Assembly: GCF_000315625.1 (NCBI RefSeq)
Contig: NW_005434623.1
Span: forward strand, 84,535-148,534
DNA length: 64,000 nucleotides
Direction: 5' to 3'
DNA from: Guillardia theta CCMP2712
Lineage: Eukaryota; Protista; Cryptophyta
The notes below the pieces were generated by a model. It worked only from the letters and a program-made list of their open reading frames with translations, made no database searches and had not been told where the DNA came from. This document shows positions 1,025-39,843 of the stretch, piece by piece. Made by a program: the position numbers and the translations under genes. Every line of letters starts with the position of its first letter. Position 1 is the stretch's first letter.

Positions 1025-3499
1025 ATGCTAGTCACACCTACTCCTGTCAGCATCATGACCTCGTCGTCGTCGTCTCCCTCTGTCAACCTCTCAGAATCCG
1101 ATGTGCTTGAGGTCGGGACAAACTTCGGTTCACTGTCGACCCTCCAGTGGGAGCCGATCAGGGCTGAAGTAGCTGTGGGCCACCTCAGCAAGCTCTCTTT
1201 GTCCCCTGAGCCCCAGCAGAGGTCGGACAACATCAGCCGATCGGCCTCCATGGCGTCCACCTTGTTAGCGGAGGAGAAAAGCCTTGTCAGCCATATCGAG
1301 CAATCGGTGATCGGCGCCGGCATGCCCATTCACACACCATTCGGCCCGCGGAAGCTGACGTATGCCGACTACACAGCATCCGGTCGATCTCTCACCTTCA
1401 TCGAGGATGCGATCAGGAACACAGTCCTCCCGCACTACGCCAACACGCACACGACTGTGTCGCATACGGGGCGGCAGACCTCCAAGTACCGTGAAGAAGC
1501 ACGGCACATCATCCTCGAGAGCGTCAACGGGCGCAAAGACAAGGACGTCGTGGTGTTCACAGGCTCCGGCTGCACGGCTGCGATCTACAAGACTGCACAG
1601 CTCCTGATGCATCGCCAGGACTGGAAAGACTCGGCCGGCACCCCGGAGGCCCCCCTAGTCCTCATCGGGCCGTACGAGCATCACTCCAACATCCTGCCAT
1701 GGCGCGAGAGCGGCGCAGACGTGGTGGAGGTGCAGCTGAACGCAACGGGCCAGGTGGACTTGGACCATCTCAGGAGAGTCTTGCGGCAGTACCAGAACCG
1801 CCGCATCAAGGTCGGATCTTTCTCGGCTGCCTCCAACGTTACGGGGATCCTGACGGACGTGGAGGCGGTTGCGACTGTTCTCCACGAGCACGGAGCCCTC
1901 GCCTTCTTCGACTACGCGGCTGCTGGGCCCTACGTGGACATCGACATGAACCCCTCGAGGCCTCTGGCGTACAAGGACGCTGTCTTCATCTCTCCGCACA
2001 AGTTCGTGGGGGGGCCGTCGACCCCCGGGGTCCTCGTGTTCAAAAAGGACTCCCTATACGGACCCTGCAAGAATCGTGGAGCTCCGGTCACACCTGCCGG
2101 AGGGACCGTCTTGTTTGTGTCTGAGATCAGCCATCAGTACCTGGACTCGGTGGAGGAGAGGGAGGAGGGAGGGACGCCGGAGATTGTAGGAGCGATCCGG
2201 TGCGGGCTGGTGTTCCGACTGAAGATGGAGGTAGGGCCGAGCACGATTGTGGAGAGAGAGCACCACTACTGGTCTCAAGCCCTTGCTGCCTGGAAGGCGA
2301 ATAAGAGTATCATCATTCTTGGGGACACGAGCGTCGCGCGACTGAGCATCGTCTCCTTCGTTGTTGCACATGGGAACAAGCTGGTTCATCACAACTTCGT
2401 CGCTTCTCTCCTCAACGATCTCTTCGGCGTGCAAGGCCGAGCAGGCTGCTCCTGCGCTGGTCCTTACGGGCAGAAACTGTTCAACATCTCACCCGCGTCC
2501 GCGTTGTGCCTAGAGCAGACGGCACTGCAAGGAGAGGAAGGGATCAAGCCGGGCTTTATTCGCATCAATTTCAATTTCTTCATCTCTCCCCACATGGCTC
2601 GCTTCCTCATCGATGCCGTTCTGTTCGTCGCAGAGCACGGGTGGAAGCTTCTGCCCTTCTACAGGCTCGACGTGAACACGGGCGAGTGGCACTACACGGG
2701 GAGCGAGAACAAGCTGGTGAAGGAGGCAGCCTCTCTCAGAAACATCTCCTTCTTCACGAGCTACAGCCAGGGAGCTGACAAAGCGCAAGTCCTCACTCCG
2801 GAGGAGATCGACAACTACTTCGAGCAGGCCAAGTCCATCGTGAGAGACGCGGAGGCCCTGGTGCAGGCCGGAAGTGTCCAAGGGACGACCTTGGGGTTCC
2901 GAAGCCCCGAGGCCGTGTGCACCAGCTGGTTCCTCTCCTCCAAGGACGCAGTGGACGACCTGCGGGCCGGGTCCTGGCCGGCTCCAATGAAGACACTCAA
3001 CGTGTATGAGAGCAGCGAGCTCCCCTCGGAGTACTACTACATGACCCACGGGCTGTGCCTGTACGAGGTCTGGATCAACATCACCAGCCTCAAGATGCAT
3101 CGGGCGAGCCGGTACGCGAGCAGCATGCCGAGCATCGAGGGAGTGAAGAAGGAGGCAGCGCACAACTGGCGGGCGATGACCGCAGGGCAGCGAGCCGACA
3201 TGAGGAAGACCCTCCATGCCCTGGTGCACCAGGCGTACGGAAGCTGCGTGAGGAAGCAGGCGAAGGGGGAAGCTGTGGGTTGGATAGATCGGAGAGCGGA
3301 GAAGGAGGCGATGGTTCAGAAGGCTGCTGCTGCTTTCTTTGCCTCGGAGGATGACGCTGACTATGCCATGAAGCCAGGGAAGGCTGCTCCTCCCCGGGTT
3401 GGCTGCTTCAGCTTTCTGGGAGGGAAGAAGCCAACCCCCGGCTTCACGCTCACCAGCGACGTTGTGGTCTCCAACGAGCAAACGTCTCATCGCTTCTGA
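1025..3499 (+). CDS. Class-V PLP aminotransferase / cysteine-desulfurase-like protein with C-terminal extension
   Basis: 824-aa uninterrupted ORF; motifs [35 protein letters not shown] (PLP lysine), [16 protein letters not shown] (catalytic-Cys position). True start could be 1025 or a later ATG. Confidence 0.9.
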
Positions 3500-3670
3500 A
3501 GCTCTCACTACTTGATTGATTCTTTTCTTTGACTTGTAAATATACTACTACTTAAGGTCGTTCCGTGATTTATTGACGGTGGGGAGGGGGAAAAGGGAAA
3601 GCGGGGAGGGGTAACTGCCTGTGAGCAGCTGGGCTCTCAGTGGAGGGCGCCGGAAAGTCTATTGAACCAG

Positions 3671-30422: not shown

Positions 30423-32403
30423 TCATCTTCTCGACTAACAACCTGATCTACTATCTCTTTCTGATTTGTCCTTAACACCTTGCTACCCTCTAGTGTGTCT
30501 CGTTGAATCGTGTAGTCCTCCCCCCTTATCGCCCTCCCTCTCCCCCTTATCTCCTCCATCCTGCCCCCGCCAAGGGCTCCTGCGCTCGGCCTTCCCTTGC
30601 GGGGAAATCCCACTGTCAATCGCATCCCTCCTAAACCCCTACCCCAAACTTTCCTCCTGTCCAATCTTTCCCCTCCAATCAAGCCCAATGCTCTGCATTC
30701 TCTCAATTGAGCTCCGATAGATTTGAGTCATCCTTCCCTCCTAACGCTCAGAGCTTCCTTTCTACCACCAGGGGTGGGTGGGCAGGGGATTTCCCTTTCT
30801 CTTTTTTTCCCTTTTTATAATTGTAGAGCACACCCTACCCCCTGTAATACCCACAGAAGTACCGGTCCTGAATTAACACCGAAAGAGATTCGAACCTGGA
30901 GCATAACCCATGTGTTGAGATTTTGCTCGCACTATCTACCACCCACCCCATTGAAAGCCCTTAGCAGTACCCCACCAACCAGATTGATCACACCCCCACC
31001 CTCTTTTCACTAGTCTGCAGTCCGGGTACTCCCCCCTATTTCAGGCTACGTCTATCGACCAGGACCCACCCCCTCTGTTTTTATTCTTTTTGCCGGACCC
31101 CTACTATCATGGTCGGGCGTGTGATGATCGTTAGCCTCCGCCAGCATCTATTGATCACCACAATGACCCCACCCCCTCCCCACCCGACCTCATAGCCTAT
31201 AAAAGCATTGAGCTCATAAGGGCGCTAACTTAAAAAGGGTTATACTTCACGAAAAAAAAAGAGGCGCATTTTATTACTGTTGTAGGACGTATTTACTGGT
31301 ACAAAAGGACTGTACCGGATATCCAGAGATTCCACTCAAGTTCCACGACAATCATGGTACACATGCCTGGTACAAATTTGTACCAGGTCTTTCACACTTA
31401 GCCATTTCGGCGTTGCTTTCATGGCGGATCGTTGCGGTTGCGCATTCGCCTTGGTCAGGTACTTGTGGGCGTCGGAACACCTCCTCACCCATCACATGAC
31501 CCCTGAATCCAGGCTCCCGATCTTCCCTCCAAGTATCAAGACGACAGCTCAAATTCAAGGTTGACTTGCCTTTGAAGTCCGATAGTGCTCAAGTCGCACA
31601 TGCTGGCTTTGCTCATGGTTTGACTGTCCCGTCTCGGACTTGCACTGAACCGTCACAGCCTTGCACTCCAGTGTGCAGACAATTCACTGATGGTGGTGGG
31701 AACGTTGTCATCACGTTGTCATCACTCATCAATATGCAGCATCTAGATGTGGTCAATGCCAAAGAAGTAACATCTCTCCAATCATGATAAACCCCTGAGC
31801 TTCAAACTCCATTTCACCCCTCATTCGCCCCCATGATCATGAATCTGTACCTCATTTGCCCCCATGATCATGAACCTGTAACACCTGACGATATGCATTA
31901 CTGTGGAATATGGTTGACACGCAACGTTCCTTTTGGAACATAACTGACCCTGAATCCAGCTTGGCATCAGTGCATGAAAATCCATAATGCCGTACATGAC
32001 AATATGCACTCCACAGATCATGTTTAGCTTGTCATCAAGACAGTGATTCATGCGAATGTCTCCTCCATCACCATCCATCACCAACATGCCAGATGGCAGC
32101 TGATGCCACGGCATCTCACAACCTCAACTCCAACAAAGCATACTCCGGCATCCCTTCCCTGTCACATTATCCACCATCCCCTTGATTTGCAGTGCAGTAT
32201 GATACCTGATCAACTGCATTGTCTGTTGCTCTCATTGTCATCATCATCCCAAAAAGTACCCTTGAGTATATCACAACCTACCATCGCTTTGGCATCGTAG
32301 CGAGACTCATTCTTTCCAACATTCCATTTCCACATGAGGGCTTAACACAGATGTATCAACTCAACAATGATTTCATTCAGGAACGAACTGTAAATTCTCT
32401 ACA

Positions 32404-35400
32404 CTACGTGCTCTGGAGAATGTCTGCATACGTCCTTTGTCCACTCTCACTATTTCTATTCGCCTCTACCTGATGGTCTTCAACTGCCAGTGACATCTCA
32501 ATACGAACCTGCTGGCGATATTCCACCAAGTGCTTGTAGTATGTGATGTATGAGTATTGCGAGTACCTCTTTCTCTGTGCCATCGCCGTCCATGCATCAT
32601 CTCCGTACGCCCTTTCCACTAGCGTACGGAAACCTGTTCTGTAACACTGACAGAAGTTGTGAGGCATAATCCCCTCATTTCCTTGCAGTACTCCTTGCTC
32701 TCGGCATATATTTTCCACCATGGTCATCACAAGATATGCTTTGTATACATTCTTCCTCGTGTTCTCATCCTTCACGTCTGCGGAGAAAGGAACCTGACTG
32801 AGGTGCTTTAAGGGCCGAATCCTCCTCACTTGTCCTTCCACGATGACATCTTGCCCCAAATTCCACCACATGAACATATTTCGAACTCTGCACCGCAAAG
32901 GAAATCGCCAAGCCAACGGGACCATGTGTCTGCCAGGCCCCCATCCTTCCCATTCGAAGTCATCCCCTCCAACTTGTATCTCACCGTTGCCATCATCCCC
33001 CAGTCCTGGTGATGAAACCAGCACCGCATTCCTCTCCGGTGTCCCCTCCCTGCTCACTTCTGCACCTTCCTCCGATTCACTCTCATTCAATCTTCCATTC
33101 GAGTCAGCATCTGCCATCACGTTGCTCACCCCATGTGCCATCATGACATGGCCTGCTCCACCCAGTACCATCTGTCGCATAGCTTCACCCACGGCGGCCT
33201 GCACCTGCTCCCCTATATTGCCCATCTGCTGCACCTGTTGTCCTATATTGGCAACCTGTTGCATGACGATGCGGAAAGCATCTGTGAAGTCCATGCTTCC
33301 AGATGTAACCTGCCCTCCACTGGGACCTCGTACATCCCTCATCCATCCAGCAACAAAACCTAAATTCGTTCGCAGTTCGTCCCTGATCACAGTTTTGAAA
33401 TCGTCAAACTTGTGGTCCAGTTCTTTCATCTTCTCCTCGATTACCTTCATCTTCTCATCCATCTTCCCCTCCATTACCTTCATCTTCTCATCCATCTTCC
33501 CCTCCATTACCTTCATCTTCTCATCCATCTTCTCCTCGATTACCTTCATCTCCTCCTTGATGGCATCTCGCACTTCAACCCTCATCTCTTTCATGCCTTT
33601 CAATATTTCTGTCTTGGTTGGAGTACCACTAGCTGACATGCCGCAATCGGTACACCTGTGCGAAGACACGATGATATGCTCTCGCAAGGACATCAGCCTT
33701 GCCATACTGCCTTGTCCAAACATTCCGAACATCGGCATGCCCCATATGTCATCGTTGCTGTGCGGAAACCATTCCTGTAGAGTTGGAAGGTGCCATAAGA
33801 TACTTGCAAGGAAGAAGCGGATACACTTTTGAAATCCTGCCGGGAAACTGCCGTAACCTGATATGAACCTCTCCCATCCGATCTCTTCTATTTGCTTCAA
33901 TCCTTCCGTTGTGAAGTGGGGTGGAAGTACAGCAAAGTCTGCCGTTCCGCTGTCGTTGCCAGCAAGAATCCTGCCTGCGAACTGGTCTCCACCCGTTCCA
34001 CCAAGGATATAGCGATCCTGCGTCTCTCCTGCCACATTTTTACTTGTTATCCCTGTTCCGCGATTTCATAGCACACATACCTATCTTCCAGTTGGCTCGG
34101 ATATACACTGTTGGAGCTCCTGGCAACAGTCCTGTCACTAACAACCGGCTGACAAACAGCACTGCAAGTCGCACCGGGACCATCCATCATACCCAGCAAA
34201 TGGGTGATTCCTCCCTTCCGCAATGAATGTGTACCAGCATTGTCCAGGTTGCCATGCTGGTCGTTTGCAGCTTGCGATGCCATGCGTTGCATGAGTTGAG
34301 CGTACCTCTGTTTCTGATCCCGCCCCATCAGCAGCTTGTTTCCCTCCCTGGCAAGGAAGACGCCTCGAGTGGCAAAGGTGTACAAAGCAAGAGTGAGGAC
34401 TGGACATATCTCTGGATTGTGGGGTGCGGCAAAAAGATGCTTGATCCTGGTGCTTTTCAAGTCAGTCCCAATCCCGGCTTGGTCAGTTTTCGTGCGCAAA
34501 AGCACTACTTTCATGTAATCATTCTCCCAATCAAAATGCTGCAGATGCAAGATGTCAAGGCTCTCACTCCTGCAGATGAGATTCCACATGAGACATGTGC
34601 ATGTCCATCCAAATATCCACGTGTCTCCGGGTGCTGTACTGCCTCGACGAGGTTTCACGTTCCTAAACATTCTGCACAGGCAGATATACTCATCCATGCT
34701 TATCCCCGTTCTGCCTTCATGAATGCGCATGACTCCTCGAGATTTCTTCTCTGTAACTACTTTCGTGTAAGACTTCATGCAACGGTCCAACACCTCGTCT
34801 ATACACATTGCTGCTTCTCCTTCTGGCATGTCCCTAGCTACAAATTCCATGTGTCTACATTGGTACAGGTACTTCAACGCGCTTTTGTACCCTCGTATCG
34901 TAGACACTGCTACTGTCGGTTTGTCCGCTGCATTGGTTACAAAATTCACGTCTTCAACGCCAGTCACTCCCACTACCAATTCAACATCATTGCTGGTGGC
35001 GCCTGCTTGTTCACCTTCAACGTCATCATCCATCTCATCATCATGTTCATCTTCATACGAAGCATGCGCCTGTGATGGACCTGCTTCCTCTTCGGCTTCA
35101 TCATCGACTTCCATGTCATCGCCATTGATCTGCATATTTGGGTGAGTGCCCTTCTTCATGCGCTTCGCTTTTGATTGCTTGATCTTGTCCCTGACCCGCT
35201 CCTTTTGCGACAAATAACCGAAGAATGCTACTAATGCATCGTATGGCAATGGCAAAATAAGGTCGTCCAAGGTTTCATTCAGAGCTGCATGATATCGTGG
35301 GTGAGACCTGAAAAAAGCTATGATAGCATGAATGCGGTATGCGTAGTTCCTCTGCGTACTAAGACTGACCACTTTTGACTGCAATTCTCGAAATGCCTGG

Positions 35401-35705
35401 ATGTTCAAATCAAGTCCCCCTGAACCAATGACTCTGCGATCCTGGAAGACACGCAATAATTCTTCGTCAGTGCGAGCACTGACCCGCCGTTTATTCGAAG
35501 GTGTTCTTTGAGTCACGGTGTTGTTATGGGCTCCTTGGTTGCATTGCCCACAATAGTTCATATCATCTGTGCCTTTCAGAGTACTAGCACAAAGATGATG
35601 AAAGGGTTTGTTGCAATACTGGCAGACTTTCAACTGAGCCTCAGGTTGCCCTCGCATAACACATGAGGCTTCATACAAGCATGTCTGCCCAGCCGGTGCC
35701 GACAT
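32404..35705 (-). CDS. Crypton tyrosine recombinase with N-terminal PHD finger (~1064 aa, 3 exons)
   Basis: Exons 35705-34175, 34119-34081, 34028-32404 (GT-AG introns of 55 and 52 nt) join in frame (3195 nt). Catalytic set: WNLICR (R), TKTD (K), GTHSLRKG (HxxR), IRANW (W), QDRY (Y); followed by GDQFAGR..LPPHF and C-terminal VP..W.FP....MF.WW..G motif, as I recall for CryptonS-type elements. Confidence 0.9.
33425..33558 (-). repeat. 33-bp coding tandem repeat (~4 copies; KMKV(M/I)E(G/E)KMDE)
   Basis: Visible in DNA and in the translation of ORF 32404..34035. Confidence 0.9.
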
Positions 35706-36405
35706 TGTTTGCCACGATGCAAACGTTCTCCGTGACTCGATATGTATACTTGCAATTGTGGTGGAATCTGTGAGATTCTGTGTCCCTGGCAGGGTTCACT
35801 CTGATGATTGTGATAGCAACGAGGAAAGATGCCCAGTCTTCCCCTTGTTTGATCGCTTCGGCTTCTACAATGGCAAGTGGGGTGCATCCACACCCGGTAG
35901 TGTGCGACCCCATGGCTTGCCGACCAGCAATATCTCCCGGCTGTACCCCTTAGTACCCTATGGGATTGAGTGTCAGTAAACGGGTGCTGTGGTACCCTAC
36001 CCATCTTGCGATGTAACGTATACCACCCCCCACCCATCTCCAGGCTTTCGTGCTCTACATTACTTCTTAAATTAAAATTGTTATGTGTCACTACTCGTAG
36101 TACTTAACGTTGTACCAAAGTCTTGCAATTTAAAATTTGAATGTAGAAGTTGTAAAAATTTCGCTCCATTGATTGGCTAAATCGTGCAGATAGCTGTGCG
36201 AAAGAATTGGGTTTTGAAGGACCGGGTCATTTGTCACATTTTAAATCTCCCCTCACCTGCGCCCTTTTTTTTGCTTGATTTTTGAGTTCAAATTTAAGGC
36301 CACCAAATAAATAACCGTTGTCTATAACATTTTTGAATAAATCAATACATGTTTTTTTTTGGGTTTTTCCTCGCGCCCTAGCGCCCAACATAAACTACTG
36401 GCACT

Positions 36406-37033
36406 AGGCGTGTTCGGTACGCCAATTACAGGTGGAATGCTGGTACATCAAAAAATTGAGTAAATCAAATATGGGACCTCGGACCCAGAATTGCAAATTC
36501 AAAAGTTGGTGGAATACACCCACAATTGCATTTCCACCGACTATTGAAACGAGAGCTTTTCGAATTAATGTACCATGAAATTGTTGTACCAGAGGCAATT
36601 TAATGTACGATGAATAATTTGTACCAGAGGCCAATTTGATGTACCGCGAGCTTACAACGCGAATTTAATTTGAATTTCTTGTATTCACCAATCGCGCGCG
36701 CATCAACCATGCAGCAACCTATGCAGGCTGAAGATCCCCACGGCGCTCCACTACGTGTTGGAGCAGGCGATGAAGAACCTAATGCAGTAGGCGTGGGAGA
36801 GCCATCTGAACTGTCCCATGCGGCCATGCAATTCAAGGGGGATGGGGAACAGCGCATGGTAGAGATCATCAAATGTGTCATGCAATACAACGATGGTGCC
36901 ATATTTGAATGGGGGAAGAAGGAGAAGACGCTGAAGGAGGCTCAGGAGGCGCTCAACGGGCATCCTGTGTTTGCAGGGCAGCTGAAGTTGAACACCTTGA
37001 AGGACAAATGTAATTGGCGTACCGAACACGCCT
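36406..37033. mobile_element. 628-bp inverted-repeat-bounded element (non-autonomous PIF/Harbinger-like, or invertible cassette)
   Basis: Perfect 25-bp inverted repeats AGGCGTGTTCGGTACGCCAATTACA at 36406-36430 and 37009-37033; ACT on both outer sides (36403-05, 37034-36); subterminal TGTACC repeats. Confidence 0.8.
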
Positions 37034-37128
37034 ACTGCGTCCCCCCACTGATTGGTCTCGGTTCCGGTCATGATTCAAAATTTCAATATTCATTGACCCT
37101 GACATCTACTGTCAAAGTTTACCCATGA
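36708..37128 (+). pseudogene. Truncated Myb/SANT(trihelix)-like ORF running into the right inverted repeat
   Basis: MVEIIKCVMQY...FEWGKKEKTLKEAQEALNGHPVFAGQLKLNTLKDK resembles a three-helix DNA-binding domain; frame continues through the repeat (CNWRTEHA). Domain call by eye only. Confidence 0.45.
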
Positions 37129-37129
37129 T

Positions 37130-37425
37130 TTCCGACCGGCGAGGCTCTGAGCCGCTGAGCCGCCCGGCCCGGCCCGGCGGTGCCACCGGCCGGGCCGGGC
37201 AGTGGGCCGCGCCGGGCCGCTGAGTGAAGTCCGAGAAAGTACTGTTACTTAACTTTGAGTAAAGTTCCAGGTTCTGGACTACCGCCGGGCTGCCCGGGGC
37301 CGGGCCGATCAGGCAAGTAACGAACTAATCTTGATTGATATCGGTAGCTCCGCCGTGACCAACGGCCGCCGACAGCCTGAGCCATCGGAGCCTCCTCATC
37401 GGCCAGGCTGAGGACCTACGGCAGC
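37130..37425. promoter_or_regulatory. GC-rich island with motif copy C (AGTACTGTTACTTAACTTTGAGTAAAG, 37238-37264)
   Basis: CCGG-rich flanks around a variant of the 27-bp motif. Confidence 0.5.
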
Positions 37426-37475
37426 ATGACGGGGATGAGGATGAGGATGAGGATGAGGATGACGATGACGATGAG

Positions 37476-37510
<35 letters not shown>

Positions 37511-39843
37511 AGCAAACAGTCATGATGAACCTGCCCGGAAGCTAACGACTGAACTTGGGAGAAGAGACTCGATCATCCGATCCGTTCGTGATAGACCTGC
37601 GATATGACAAGAGTGCGGAGGAAGCGAGAAGAGCATGTTAGAGCTCCTGTGCGGTGAGTGAAACATGCGAATCTCTTGATGGTACCCTCCTAGAGGTCCC
37701 AGCGAGAGTTGGGGACAGGGGGAAGAGCCCGGACTCTTGCTCCAGCATGTCACTGTTATTATCTCATTGCTGCTGTTGCCATCAGCAGAATGTCTCCTCA
37801 CCGTGCTCGTTGCTGTCTTTGATCGTCTTGCCGTGAGAGTTGAGGTGGTGTGTGTCTGAACGACTTGGAGCAGACCGACGACTCCCCCAGAGCTCCGACA
37901 GGCTCTGGGTGTAGGAGAGAAGGGACAGCGGGAGGAGTTTGCGAGAAAGATCCTGCAGGATGTGATGGCAGAAGAGAGCCGCCGTTCCTCTCGAAGCAGC
38001 AGGCGGGAGGTACTTGCAAACACGAGAATCACTGCAAGGATTGAACATCCTTCTACAGGACGTTCAGCGGTCAGAGTCAGCGATGAGTTACTATGGTGTT
38101 GACGATGCTTGTATCTTGGAAGCAACTGACGGCCAACGCCAGGCCATGAGCAAAGCTTGTCGATGGAGTCGTTGCATTTGAGGAATGTAAGAGTGTCTGT
38201 GACGACTTCTCTTGCTCTCTTTCTGCCGTCTGACATGGCCGCAGATCGATTCGGCTCGAAGTCACCCGGACTTCCGCTCCTCGTCTCCTCTTGCCATGTC
38301 GCAACGGGTAAGTCTTGAGGCGGTGAGCTGATGGTTGAAAGTGAGTCGCGTGCCACAGCCGCACACGTCAAGAACTGTCGCTGTCTCCTTCTACGACGAG
38401 AAGTTGGAGGTAGAAGATCAAGGTTTGCGCCTGAACGTCCTCCATTCTCATTGTCACCCTATGTGTGTTCTGCAAAGATCCAAGTCACATGGACGACGAG
38501 TTCTTCATCACCTCAACAAAGTTTCACGAGGAGCAATCGCAGCAGCCCAACTCACACCTGAGGTGGTCCTCGCCATGATCGCGTTCCACTGACTCGCTGC
38601 AAGTGCTCCGCAACATGAGCATCATGATGGCGCCAACCACCTGCAGCACCGCCCTCTCCCCTCCGTGGTGTCTTGTGTCTGCATCACGTTGTGACCGTGC
38701 AAGGCTGACCGTTGCCCTTGGACCAGGTCAAGGAGCTTCTCCCTCACTACATGGACCAGACGCCAACGGGGCGGCAGGAAGCAGCTCTTAAGGTCCTGCA
38801 GCCCCCTCCTCCCGCCTGTCTCTCACTACCCGCAGACACGAGAGATGAAAGGAGCAGAAAGGATCCTGTCATATTACGCTAAAGTCTGCTGACATGTAAG
38901 TGTTGGTCGCCTCTGACGGCCTGACTCAGCCGGGGTTGCCATGGACGGCAGCGACGAAGCAAGCAAGGTTCCTGCAGCGAGTGGAGAGAGCAAGAGAGGC
39001 AAGAGGAGCACCCGATCCCGCAGCTCCCTGCTCACCTGCTCCCAGAGTTGCTCTGAGCTCTCCAACAAGCTCGAGTCCGAAATCATCCGGTCCTCTCAGC
39101 AAGACACGCAAGAGCAGCAGAGCCTGCGCTTTCGCATCTCCAAGGTACAAGCCAGCTCCTCTTCTCTTCGTCTCCTCAGTCTCGCCAGCAACTGGACAAT
39201 GAGAGCAAGCACCTTGAGCGCAGCATCGACGTTAGCCATGGCCGGATCGCCATCTACCCTGCCTCAGCGGCAGCTTCGAGGTTTGACCAGGAGGAAGAGA
39301 GAGGAGGAGGAGAGTGGGAGGAGGAGAGAGGAGAAGGAGAAAGAGAGAGGAAGTGAGAGGAGAAGGAGAAGGAGAAGGAGAAAGAGAGAGCAGGGGGAGG
39401 AGATAAAAGAGAAGTTACAAGTAAGCAGGGTGAACTATGAGTCGGGCCTCTCATGGGCGCCAACAAGCATCCCCTGGAGGAAGGATCCCCTGTCAGGGGA
39501 ATGGATCCGGGTAGACAAGCAGAGCTTCTGGGGTGGAGGTGAGAGCTATGGCACCTGTTGCTTCCCTCTTACGCTTCTCACAGGCTACCACGTGGCTCGA
39601 CCGAGAACAACAGATGAGCCTTTTGTACAGTTGGATGCAAATTCCGTGAAGACCATCGTCAACCCGGTCTGCCTCTCCTGCTCCTGCTTCTCTTCCTACT
39701 CCTGCTTCTCTCCCTGCTCCTGCTTCTCTTCCTACTCCTGCTTCTCTCCCTGCTCCTGCTTCTCCTCGTTCCCCTCCTTCTACCCTCACAACCGTGTTTG
39801 CTGCAGGTTCTCCGCCATATCCGACCGCCCAAGTAAGGACTAG
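37426..39843 (+). CDS. Multi-exon hypothetical gene(s)
   Basis: Series of short coding-like segments flanked by GT/AG; no recognisable domain; structure unresolved. Confidence 0.3.

Follow-up and report, generated by a model that had tools for sequence, protein, structure and literature searches.

Within the genome of the cryptophyte Guillardia theta CCMP2712, a segment of about 0.6 kb is bounded by perfect inverted repeats and lies close to a gene for a tyrosine recombinase, and the question that this arrangement raises is whether the segment is a small transposon or a piece of DNA that the recombinase inverts. The locus is part of a stretch of 64,000 nucleotides that was analysed as a whole (contig NW_005434623.1, positions 84,535 to 148,534 of the forward strand), which we refer to as the window; coordinates are those of the window unless another contig or locus is named. 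A preliminary description of this DNA had put forward both readings. We consider it about 93% probable that the segment, here called the cassette, is a non-autonomous derivative that arose by internal deletion from a low-copy, recently active PIF/Harbinger transposon of G. theta.

The cassette proper occupies positions 36406–37033 (628 bp). A repeat search of the window recovers its ends as an inverted pair of 30 nt (36401–36430 and 37009–37038) that is 97% complementary with a single mismatch, and the core of this pair is a perfect 25-bp repeat (36406–36430 and 37009–37033), in agreement with the preliminary description. The triplet ACT is present on both sides, at 36403–36405 and again at 37034–37036, as had likewise been noted, and these are assigned as the left and right target-site duplications. 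The left terminal inverted repeat (36406–36430, plus strand) contains the dyad GGCGT-N7-ACGCC, corresponds to the end of the element with the probable Myb-type gene, and is the same sequence that forms termini on contigs C13, C16, C276, C127 and C137; the right terminal repeat (37009–37033, minus strand) corresponds to the transposase end, of which nothing more is retained. Between them, 36431–37008 is interior kept from a larger parent element, made up of a subterminal region and the 5′ part of the parent's second (probably Myb-type) gene on the plus strand, and it is 100% identical to the copy on C13. The repeat searches also show that this interior includes two tandem 35-bp subterminal repeats rich in the motif GGTACA (36565–36634, plus strand), which are probably protein-binding sites, as predicted from their sequence.

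A plus-strand open reading frame of 152 amino acids (36670–37128, with its first ATG at 36709) enters the right repeat, crosses it into the flanking DNA and ends ...VYP, as previously described. From the ATG onwards (36709–37128) it is a truncated version of the second gene of the parent (ORF2), consisting of residues 14–113 of a 359-residue protein followed by read-through of the repeat and the flank. The minus-strand reading frame at 36404–36634 ends ...CNWRTEHA-stop, also as reported. The cassette locus occurs once in the assembly. Nested CCGGGCCGGGC palindromes make up a G+C-rich stretch immediately beyond the right end of the cassette (37140–37320), and after these comes a run of GAT-GAG/GAC triplets (37416–37522) that would be an Asp/Glu-rich coding run if translated; a search of the genome found no other copies of either.

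A DNA search of the whole genome using the cassette as query returned several partial and longer copies and located the autonomous parent, a 2,859 bp (2.86 kb) element on C13 (L021:1004–3862) with perfect 29-bp terminal inverted repeats and two convergent ORFs. The first of these (1156–2502) matches the Pfam family DDE_Tnp_4 (PF13359) with an E value of 9.4e-18 and a score of 64.8 bits, the curated cut-off being 24.8, and the ORF is open both on C13 and on C16. Its translation in the C13 copy contains the motifs FDGH, GDSAY and IENCFG, which we take, from general knowledge of the family, to be the DDE triad. The second ORF (2518–3597) is on the opposite strand and encodes 359 amino acids, and its first part is the ORF of the cassette. 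With a parent that encodes a DDE_Tnp_4 transposase, contains a probably Myb-type ORF and has the same termini and the same type of duplication, the first of the two earlier readings, in which the cassette is a PIF/Harbinger-like deletion derivative, non-autonomous and flanked by a 3-bp duplication, holds up well.

Alignment of the cassette with the parent places the deletion precisely. The first 606 bp of the cassette (36406 to 37010 or 37011) are 100% identical to the ORF2 end of the C13 element, within L021:3254–3862, and in the genome search positions 2–610 of the cassette query match at 100%. Past the 606 bp the cassette jumps to the terminal 25–27 bp of the parent's transposase end, such that 2.2 kb of internal sequence is missing. 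In the parent the two sides of the deletion read ...GGACAAATGGCGC... and ...GACCTGTAATTGG..., and the cassette junction reads ...GGACAAATGTAATTGG..., so that a TG dinucleotide (37009–37010) connects the interior of ORF2 with the inner boundary of the opposite terminal repeat; this 2-bp microhomology is all that the two parental sequences share. It could be argued that a full-length copy occupies this site and that the 2.2-kb gap reflects collapse during assembly, since the near-identical copies on C13, C16 and C276 could mislead an assembler. Such collapse normally takes place across long repeats, whereas the junction here lies in unique ORF2 sequence and reaches the inner edge of the repeat through just two shared base pairs, with no run of N at the locus, and we regard an artefact as having almost no chance of being the explanation.

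The parent also bears on the role of the dyad in the terminal repeats. A near copy of the terminal-repeat core, sharing 16 of 19 bases, is found at L021:1090–1108, 86 bp inside the parent's transposase end, and is probably a protein-binding site, again as a prediction from sequence. Because a near copy in this position is what would be expected for such sites, the dyad itself is most likely a binding site for the Harbinger element's own proteins.

The preliminary description had proposed a search for dispersed copies of the repeat and for a DDE transposase partner, and both were found: besides the DDE_Tnp_4 parent on C13, there are 12 matches to the 25-mer terminal repeat in the 87-Mb genome when up to 3 mismatches are allowed, against 0 for a reversed control. 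The 12 repeats are spread over ~8 loci, six of which have no recombinase match near them (C13 (54–57 kb), C127, C137, C12, C98 and C28 (37 kb)). Near-identical copies of the Harbinger element are present on C13, C16 and C276. On C127 there is a second, older derivative, 1.5 kb long and internally deleted at several places; it is 96.8–98.7% identical across its segments (90% by the genome search) and has a mutated terminal repeat, and the copies on C137, C12, C98 and C28 are decayed or truncated. The whole-genome search found no second locus that matches the entire 638-bp query across the deletion junction; as this exact deletion form is found nowhere else, the cassette stands alone as a derivative and does not belong to an amplified MITE family. 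That the parent is active and that the cassette may itself be mobile is suggested only by sequence identity and open reading frames.

The copies on C13 and C16 share 627 bp of flanking sequence on the transposase side (L021:377–1003 and C16:257518–258144) that is 100% identical, and the whole shared block, element included, is 99.9% identical; the flanks at the other end differ. For the most part this shared flank is repetitive in its own right and recurs on C11 and C322.

Two complete elements bear on the nature of the target-site duplication. Reading outward from the repeats, the window element has ACT at its ORF2 end and AGT at its transposase end, and the C13 element has the reverse. On the plus strand both are flanked by direct ACT...ACT, but in opposite sense relative to the element, and the triplet is therefore a direct repeat rather than an extension of the inverted repeats. 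ACT or AGT borders nine of the 12 terminal-repeat ends, and TAA or TTA borders none of them (0/12). The two complete young elements thus point to A[C/G]T as the target and to a duplication of 3 bp. PIF/Harbinger elements have 25–50 bp repeats, a 3-bp duplication, and two genes, one for the transposase and one for a Myb-like protein (PMC9179366), and their usual target consensus is TWA (bioRxiv 10.64898/2026.05.26.728016). A[C/G]T does not match TWA, which is the usual target but not a defining one.

A somewhat different account would keep the same deletion derivative and give it a 2-bp TA duplication, with termini starting at GGCG as in ISL2EU-like or Tc1/mariner-like elements. TA does flank every terminal-repeat end too, and the old C127 copy, which has AGT at one end and AGA at the opposite end, is easier to reconcile with TA than with a duplication of 3 bp. 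The C127 copy, however, is diverged and mutated in its terminal repeat, and a TA model requires that the two young complete elements, both of which have full direct triplets, inserted by coincidence into ACTACT and AGTAGT targets. Moreover, a DDE_Tnp_4-type transposase together with a probably Myb-type partner gene is the layout of Harbinger, and we consider the TA model very unlikely. CACTA-type ends with a 3-bp duplication were ruled out, as the flanks outside CAC/CTG do not repeat.

Empty sites of the Harbinger element were sought at several places, and none was found. The predicted empty allele of the cassette site is absent from the assembly at up to 3 mismatches; the right flank of the cassette is unique in the genome, and the left flank of the neighbouring recombinase element is unique as well. 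As for a paralogous empty site reached through the flank shared by C13 and C16, the C11 copy of that flank ends 33 bp short of the junction, and the other flank of the C13 element is unique.

The protein encoded by ORF2 has no Pfam match even at an E value of 10, and nor have about 24–25 of its relatives. A word-based protein search with ORF2 found two Guillardia proteins only, and an exhaustive HMMER search found 52 relatives, the named members of which are all from the cryptophytes Guillardia and Hanusia phi, the remainder being from short environmental contigs. The family has a conserved domain at approximately residues 57–140 in which L95, N96, F101, L105, K106 and W114 are nearly invariant. 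Homologues of ORF2 are arranged tail-to-tail with DDE_Tnp_4 genes at six loci in the Guillardia genome (C13, C16/C276, C206, C12, C70 and C88) that span at least three divergent transposase lineages, and this recurrent arrangement identifies ORF2 as the Harbinger partner gene. In addition, there are ORF2 homologues with no adjacent DDE_Tnp_4 match (C57:105728, C78:227178, C48:401396, C14:845802, C23:798829 and C358:6895), and these could be domesticated copies or the partners of transposases too divergent to detect. No description of Harbinger elements from Guillardia was found in the literature searched.

The AlphaFold model of ORF2 has pLDDT values above 90 over residues 60–200. Foldseek comparisons of the whole-protein and domain models with the PDB gave no match at an E value of 0.001 or better. 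With VIA-align, and at Z scores that are middling throughout, the domain model is closest to the Arabidopsis GT-1 trihelix domain (Z 8.0, rmsd 4.4, 78/86 residues), next to the DNA-binding domain of Sap1 (Z 7.0) and to Zeste (Z 6.6), and then to PHR2, ISWI SANT/SLIDE, DMAP1, ARR1, LUX, Tbf1, ZZZ3, Cdc5 and RAD; the whole-protein model places Sap1 first (Z 7.2, a middling value, over 103/105 residues). The top atlas cluster for ORF2 is named Myb/SANT-like, with a score of 0.92. The Sap1 domain is described as a helix-turn-helix of the Myb type that has a fourth helix (PMC6053445), and the notion that it might be recombinase-like was dropped on these grounds. Because a single fold class dominates the list of structural matches, albeit at middling Z scores, Myb-like is the best reading of the modelled ORF2 domain, one that is supported rather than proven.

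The deletion in the cassette cuts ORF2 between K113 and the nearly invariant W114, inside a predicted helix at residues 107–127, which in the model is the third (recognition) helix of the domain. The cassette ORF is thus the dead stump of a probable DNA-binding protein, whichever way the cassette is oriented.

The recombinase ORF starts at 35705, to the left of the cassette and ~700 bp from it, as the preliminary description had stated, and it belongs to a Crypton. The limits of this 5.2-kb element (31199–36394, minus strand, with ATAAA at both ends) were set by a genome search with positions 30500–36404, in which other copies match that span only; it contains the recombinase ORF (34047–35705) and a second ORF (32404–34035). 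The ten bases from its right end at 36394 (36395–36404, including the first two of the left ACT) precede T 36405, at which the strict inverted match begins, with the 25-bp terminal repeat beginning at 36406, 11 bases beyond the end of the Crypton. With the Crypton ending at 36394, the 700 bp that separate the recombinase ORF from the cassette are the Crypton's own upstream region, and the Crypton is a separate element that is not part of the cassette.

Copies of this Crypton are present on six other contigs (C168, C59, C170, C22, C36 and C94). At C168:96153–107354 several copies and part-copies stand head to tail and are joined through a single ATAAA, an array that would be expected if circles had integrated into resident copies. 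The circle junction of the window Crypton consists of GCGCCCTAGCGCCCAAC, ATAAA, 16 bases, and GGGCGCT. The Harbinger copy on C276/C16 contains, ~280 bp inside its ORF2 end, a nested Crypton of a second family (L022 1760–6392 on C276); the recombinase of this Crypton is 53–60% identical, ATACAAG bounds it, and the C13 element is an exact empty site for it (L021:3576–3589). Both families have GCGCCCTA before the joint and GGGCGCT 14–16 bp after it, and these are candidate recombinase-binding arms. Neither GGCGT nor ACGCC is found at the joints of either family, where ATAAA or ATACAAG lies between GCGCCC and GGGCGC. Altogether there are ~60–70 recombinase loci in the 87-Mb genome. In the literature searched, one paper mentions Crypton and Guillardia theta together, in another context.

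These data allow the second reading of the preliminary description to be assessed, namely that the neighbouring Crypton recombinase uses the dyads of the two repeats as core sites and flips the 628 bp between them, thereby turning the internal ORF round and altering its end. A recombinase gene that appears intact does lie ~700 bp from the cassette, each repeat does contain a dyad of 5 bp around a 7-bp spacer, and the Crypton arm CTAGGGCG resembles the end of the repeat together with its flank, CTAGGCG, over 7–8 bases. The dyad was thus correctly described, but its geometry is not rare: a 5-bp dyad with a 7-bp spacer is present in 1.9% of random 25-mers from the window, and one with a spacer of 3–10 bp in 7%. 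The joints of the Crypton, unlike the cassette repeats, are without GGCGT and ACGCC, the element ends outside the cassette, and its copies on the six other contigs are not accompanied by the repeats. The repeats in turn mark the ends of a DDE transposon that is present at ~8 loci, six of them with no recombinase match on the same stretch, and it is on this dispersal away from recombinase genes, one of two signs named beforehand as evidence against a switch, that the inversion reading fails. Inversion would also act on an internal ORF that is a truncated stump in either orientation. We therefore do not retain the second reading, which we judge to be extremely improbable.

There remains the closeness of the two kinds of element. 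Two of the ~8 loci of the Harbinger family touch a Crypton, in both cases near the ORF2 (Myb-gene) end, with the Crypton 11 bp outside the Harbinger end in the window and ~280 bp inside it on C16/C276. Two different Crypton families are involved; relative to the Harbinger gene the two Cryptons face opposite ways, and they occupy different targets. A neighbour at 11 bp would rarely be expected under random placement, given the number of recombinase loci in the genome. Where genes are densely packed, the insertions that persist are mostly those in repeats already present, which argues for ordinary nesting, and we conclude that the Crypton beside the cassette reflects nesting of mobile elements without functional coupling. 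The contacts may alternatively be other than chance if Harbinger ends, or proteins bound at them, attract Crypton integration, in the strongest form of which the recombinase would act on the terminal repeats; we give this idea only a slim likelihood.

As to how a PIF/Harbinger deletion derivative came to be at this site, a full-length copy would have inserted at an ACT target by DDE cut-and-paste transposition, and the inserted copy would then have lost 2.2 kb, most likely through interrupted gap repair after excision, with the ends rejoined at the TG microhomology. Alternatively, the deletion may have formed elsewhere and the short copy may have moved to the window site afterwards. Internal deletion, or abortive gap repair, is a commonly proposed source of short non-autonomous DNA transposons (bioRxiv 10.64898/2026.05.26.728016).

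It was tempting to see here a eukaryotic chromosomal inversion switch driven by a recombinase, but that claim is unsupported and has been removed. What the locus documents instead is a young and probably still active PIF/Harbinger family in a cryptophyte, to judge from an intact parent and a derivative that is 100% identical to it. The family is characterised by an unusual A[C/G]T target and by a lineage-restricted family of partner proteins that Pfam models do not recognise. The elements should be of use in repeat annotation of Guillardia theta, and they would offer a natural pair of donor and helper if a transposon tool for cryptophytes is wanted.

Comparison with known systems places the cassette among the DNA transposons. 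The resemblance to the yeast 2-micron plasmid FLP/FRT system and to the Escherichia coli fim switch is one of geometry only, that is, inverted repeats containing a short dyad near a recombinase gene; unlike in those systems, the cassette repeats form the ends of a transposon and are accompanied by a target duplication, their inheritance is separate from that of the recombinase gene, and the neighbouring recombinase's own joints look different from them. The neighbour itself is like other Cryptons in having a tyrosine recombinase, no terminal inverted repeats, a short direct repeat (ATAAA), and head-to-tail arrays, and the cassette shares nothing with it, as the ends differ, Crypton-free copies of the repeats exist elsewhere, and the enzyme is a different one. 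With PIF/Harbinger elements, by contrast, the Guillardia family shares a DDE_Tnp_4 transposase, a second gene that is probably of Myb/trihelix type, terminal inverted repeats of 25–29 bp and a 3-bp duplication (PMC9179366), differing in its A[C/G]T rather than TWA target and in a second protein without a Pfam Myb or MADF match. The cassette resembles Tourist-like MITEs, and Harbinger-1M_cIno of C. inopinata, in being a short derivative that keeps the ends of its parent after an internal deletion (bioRxiv 10.64898/2026.05.26.728016), and it is unlike MITEs in being present as a single copy that has not been amplified.
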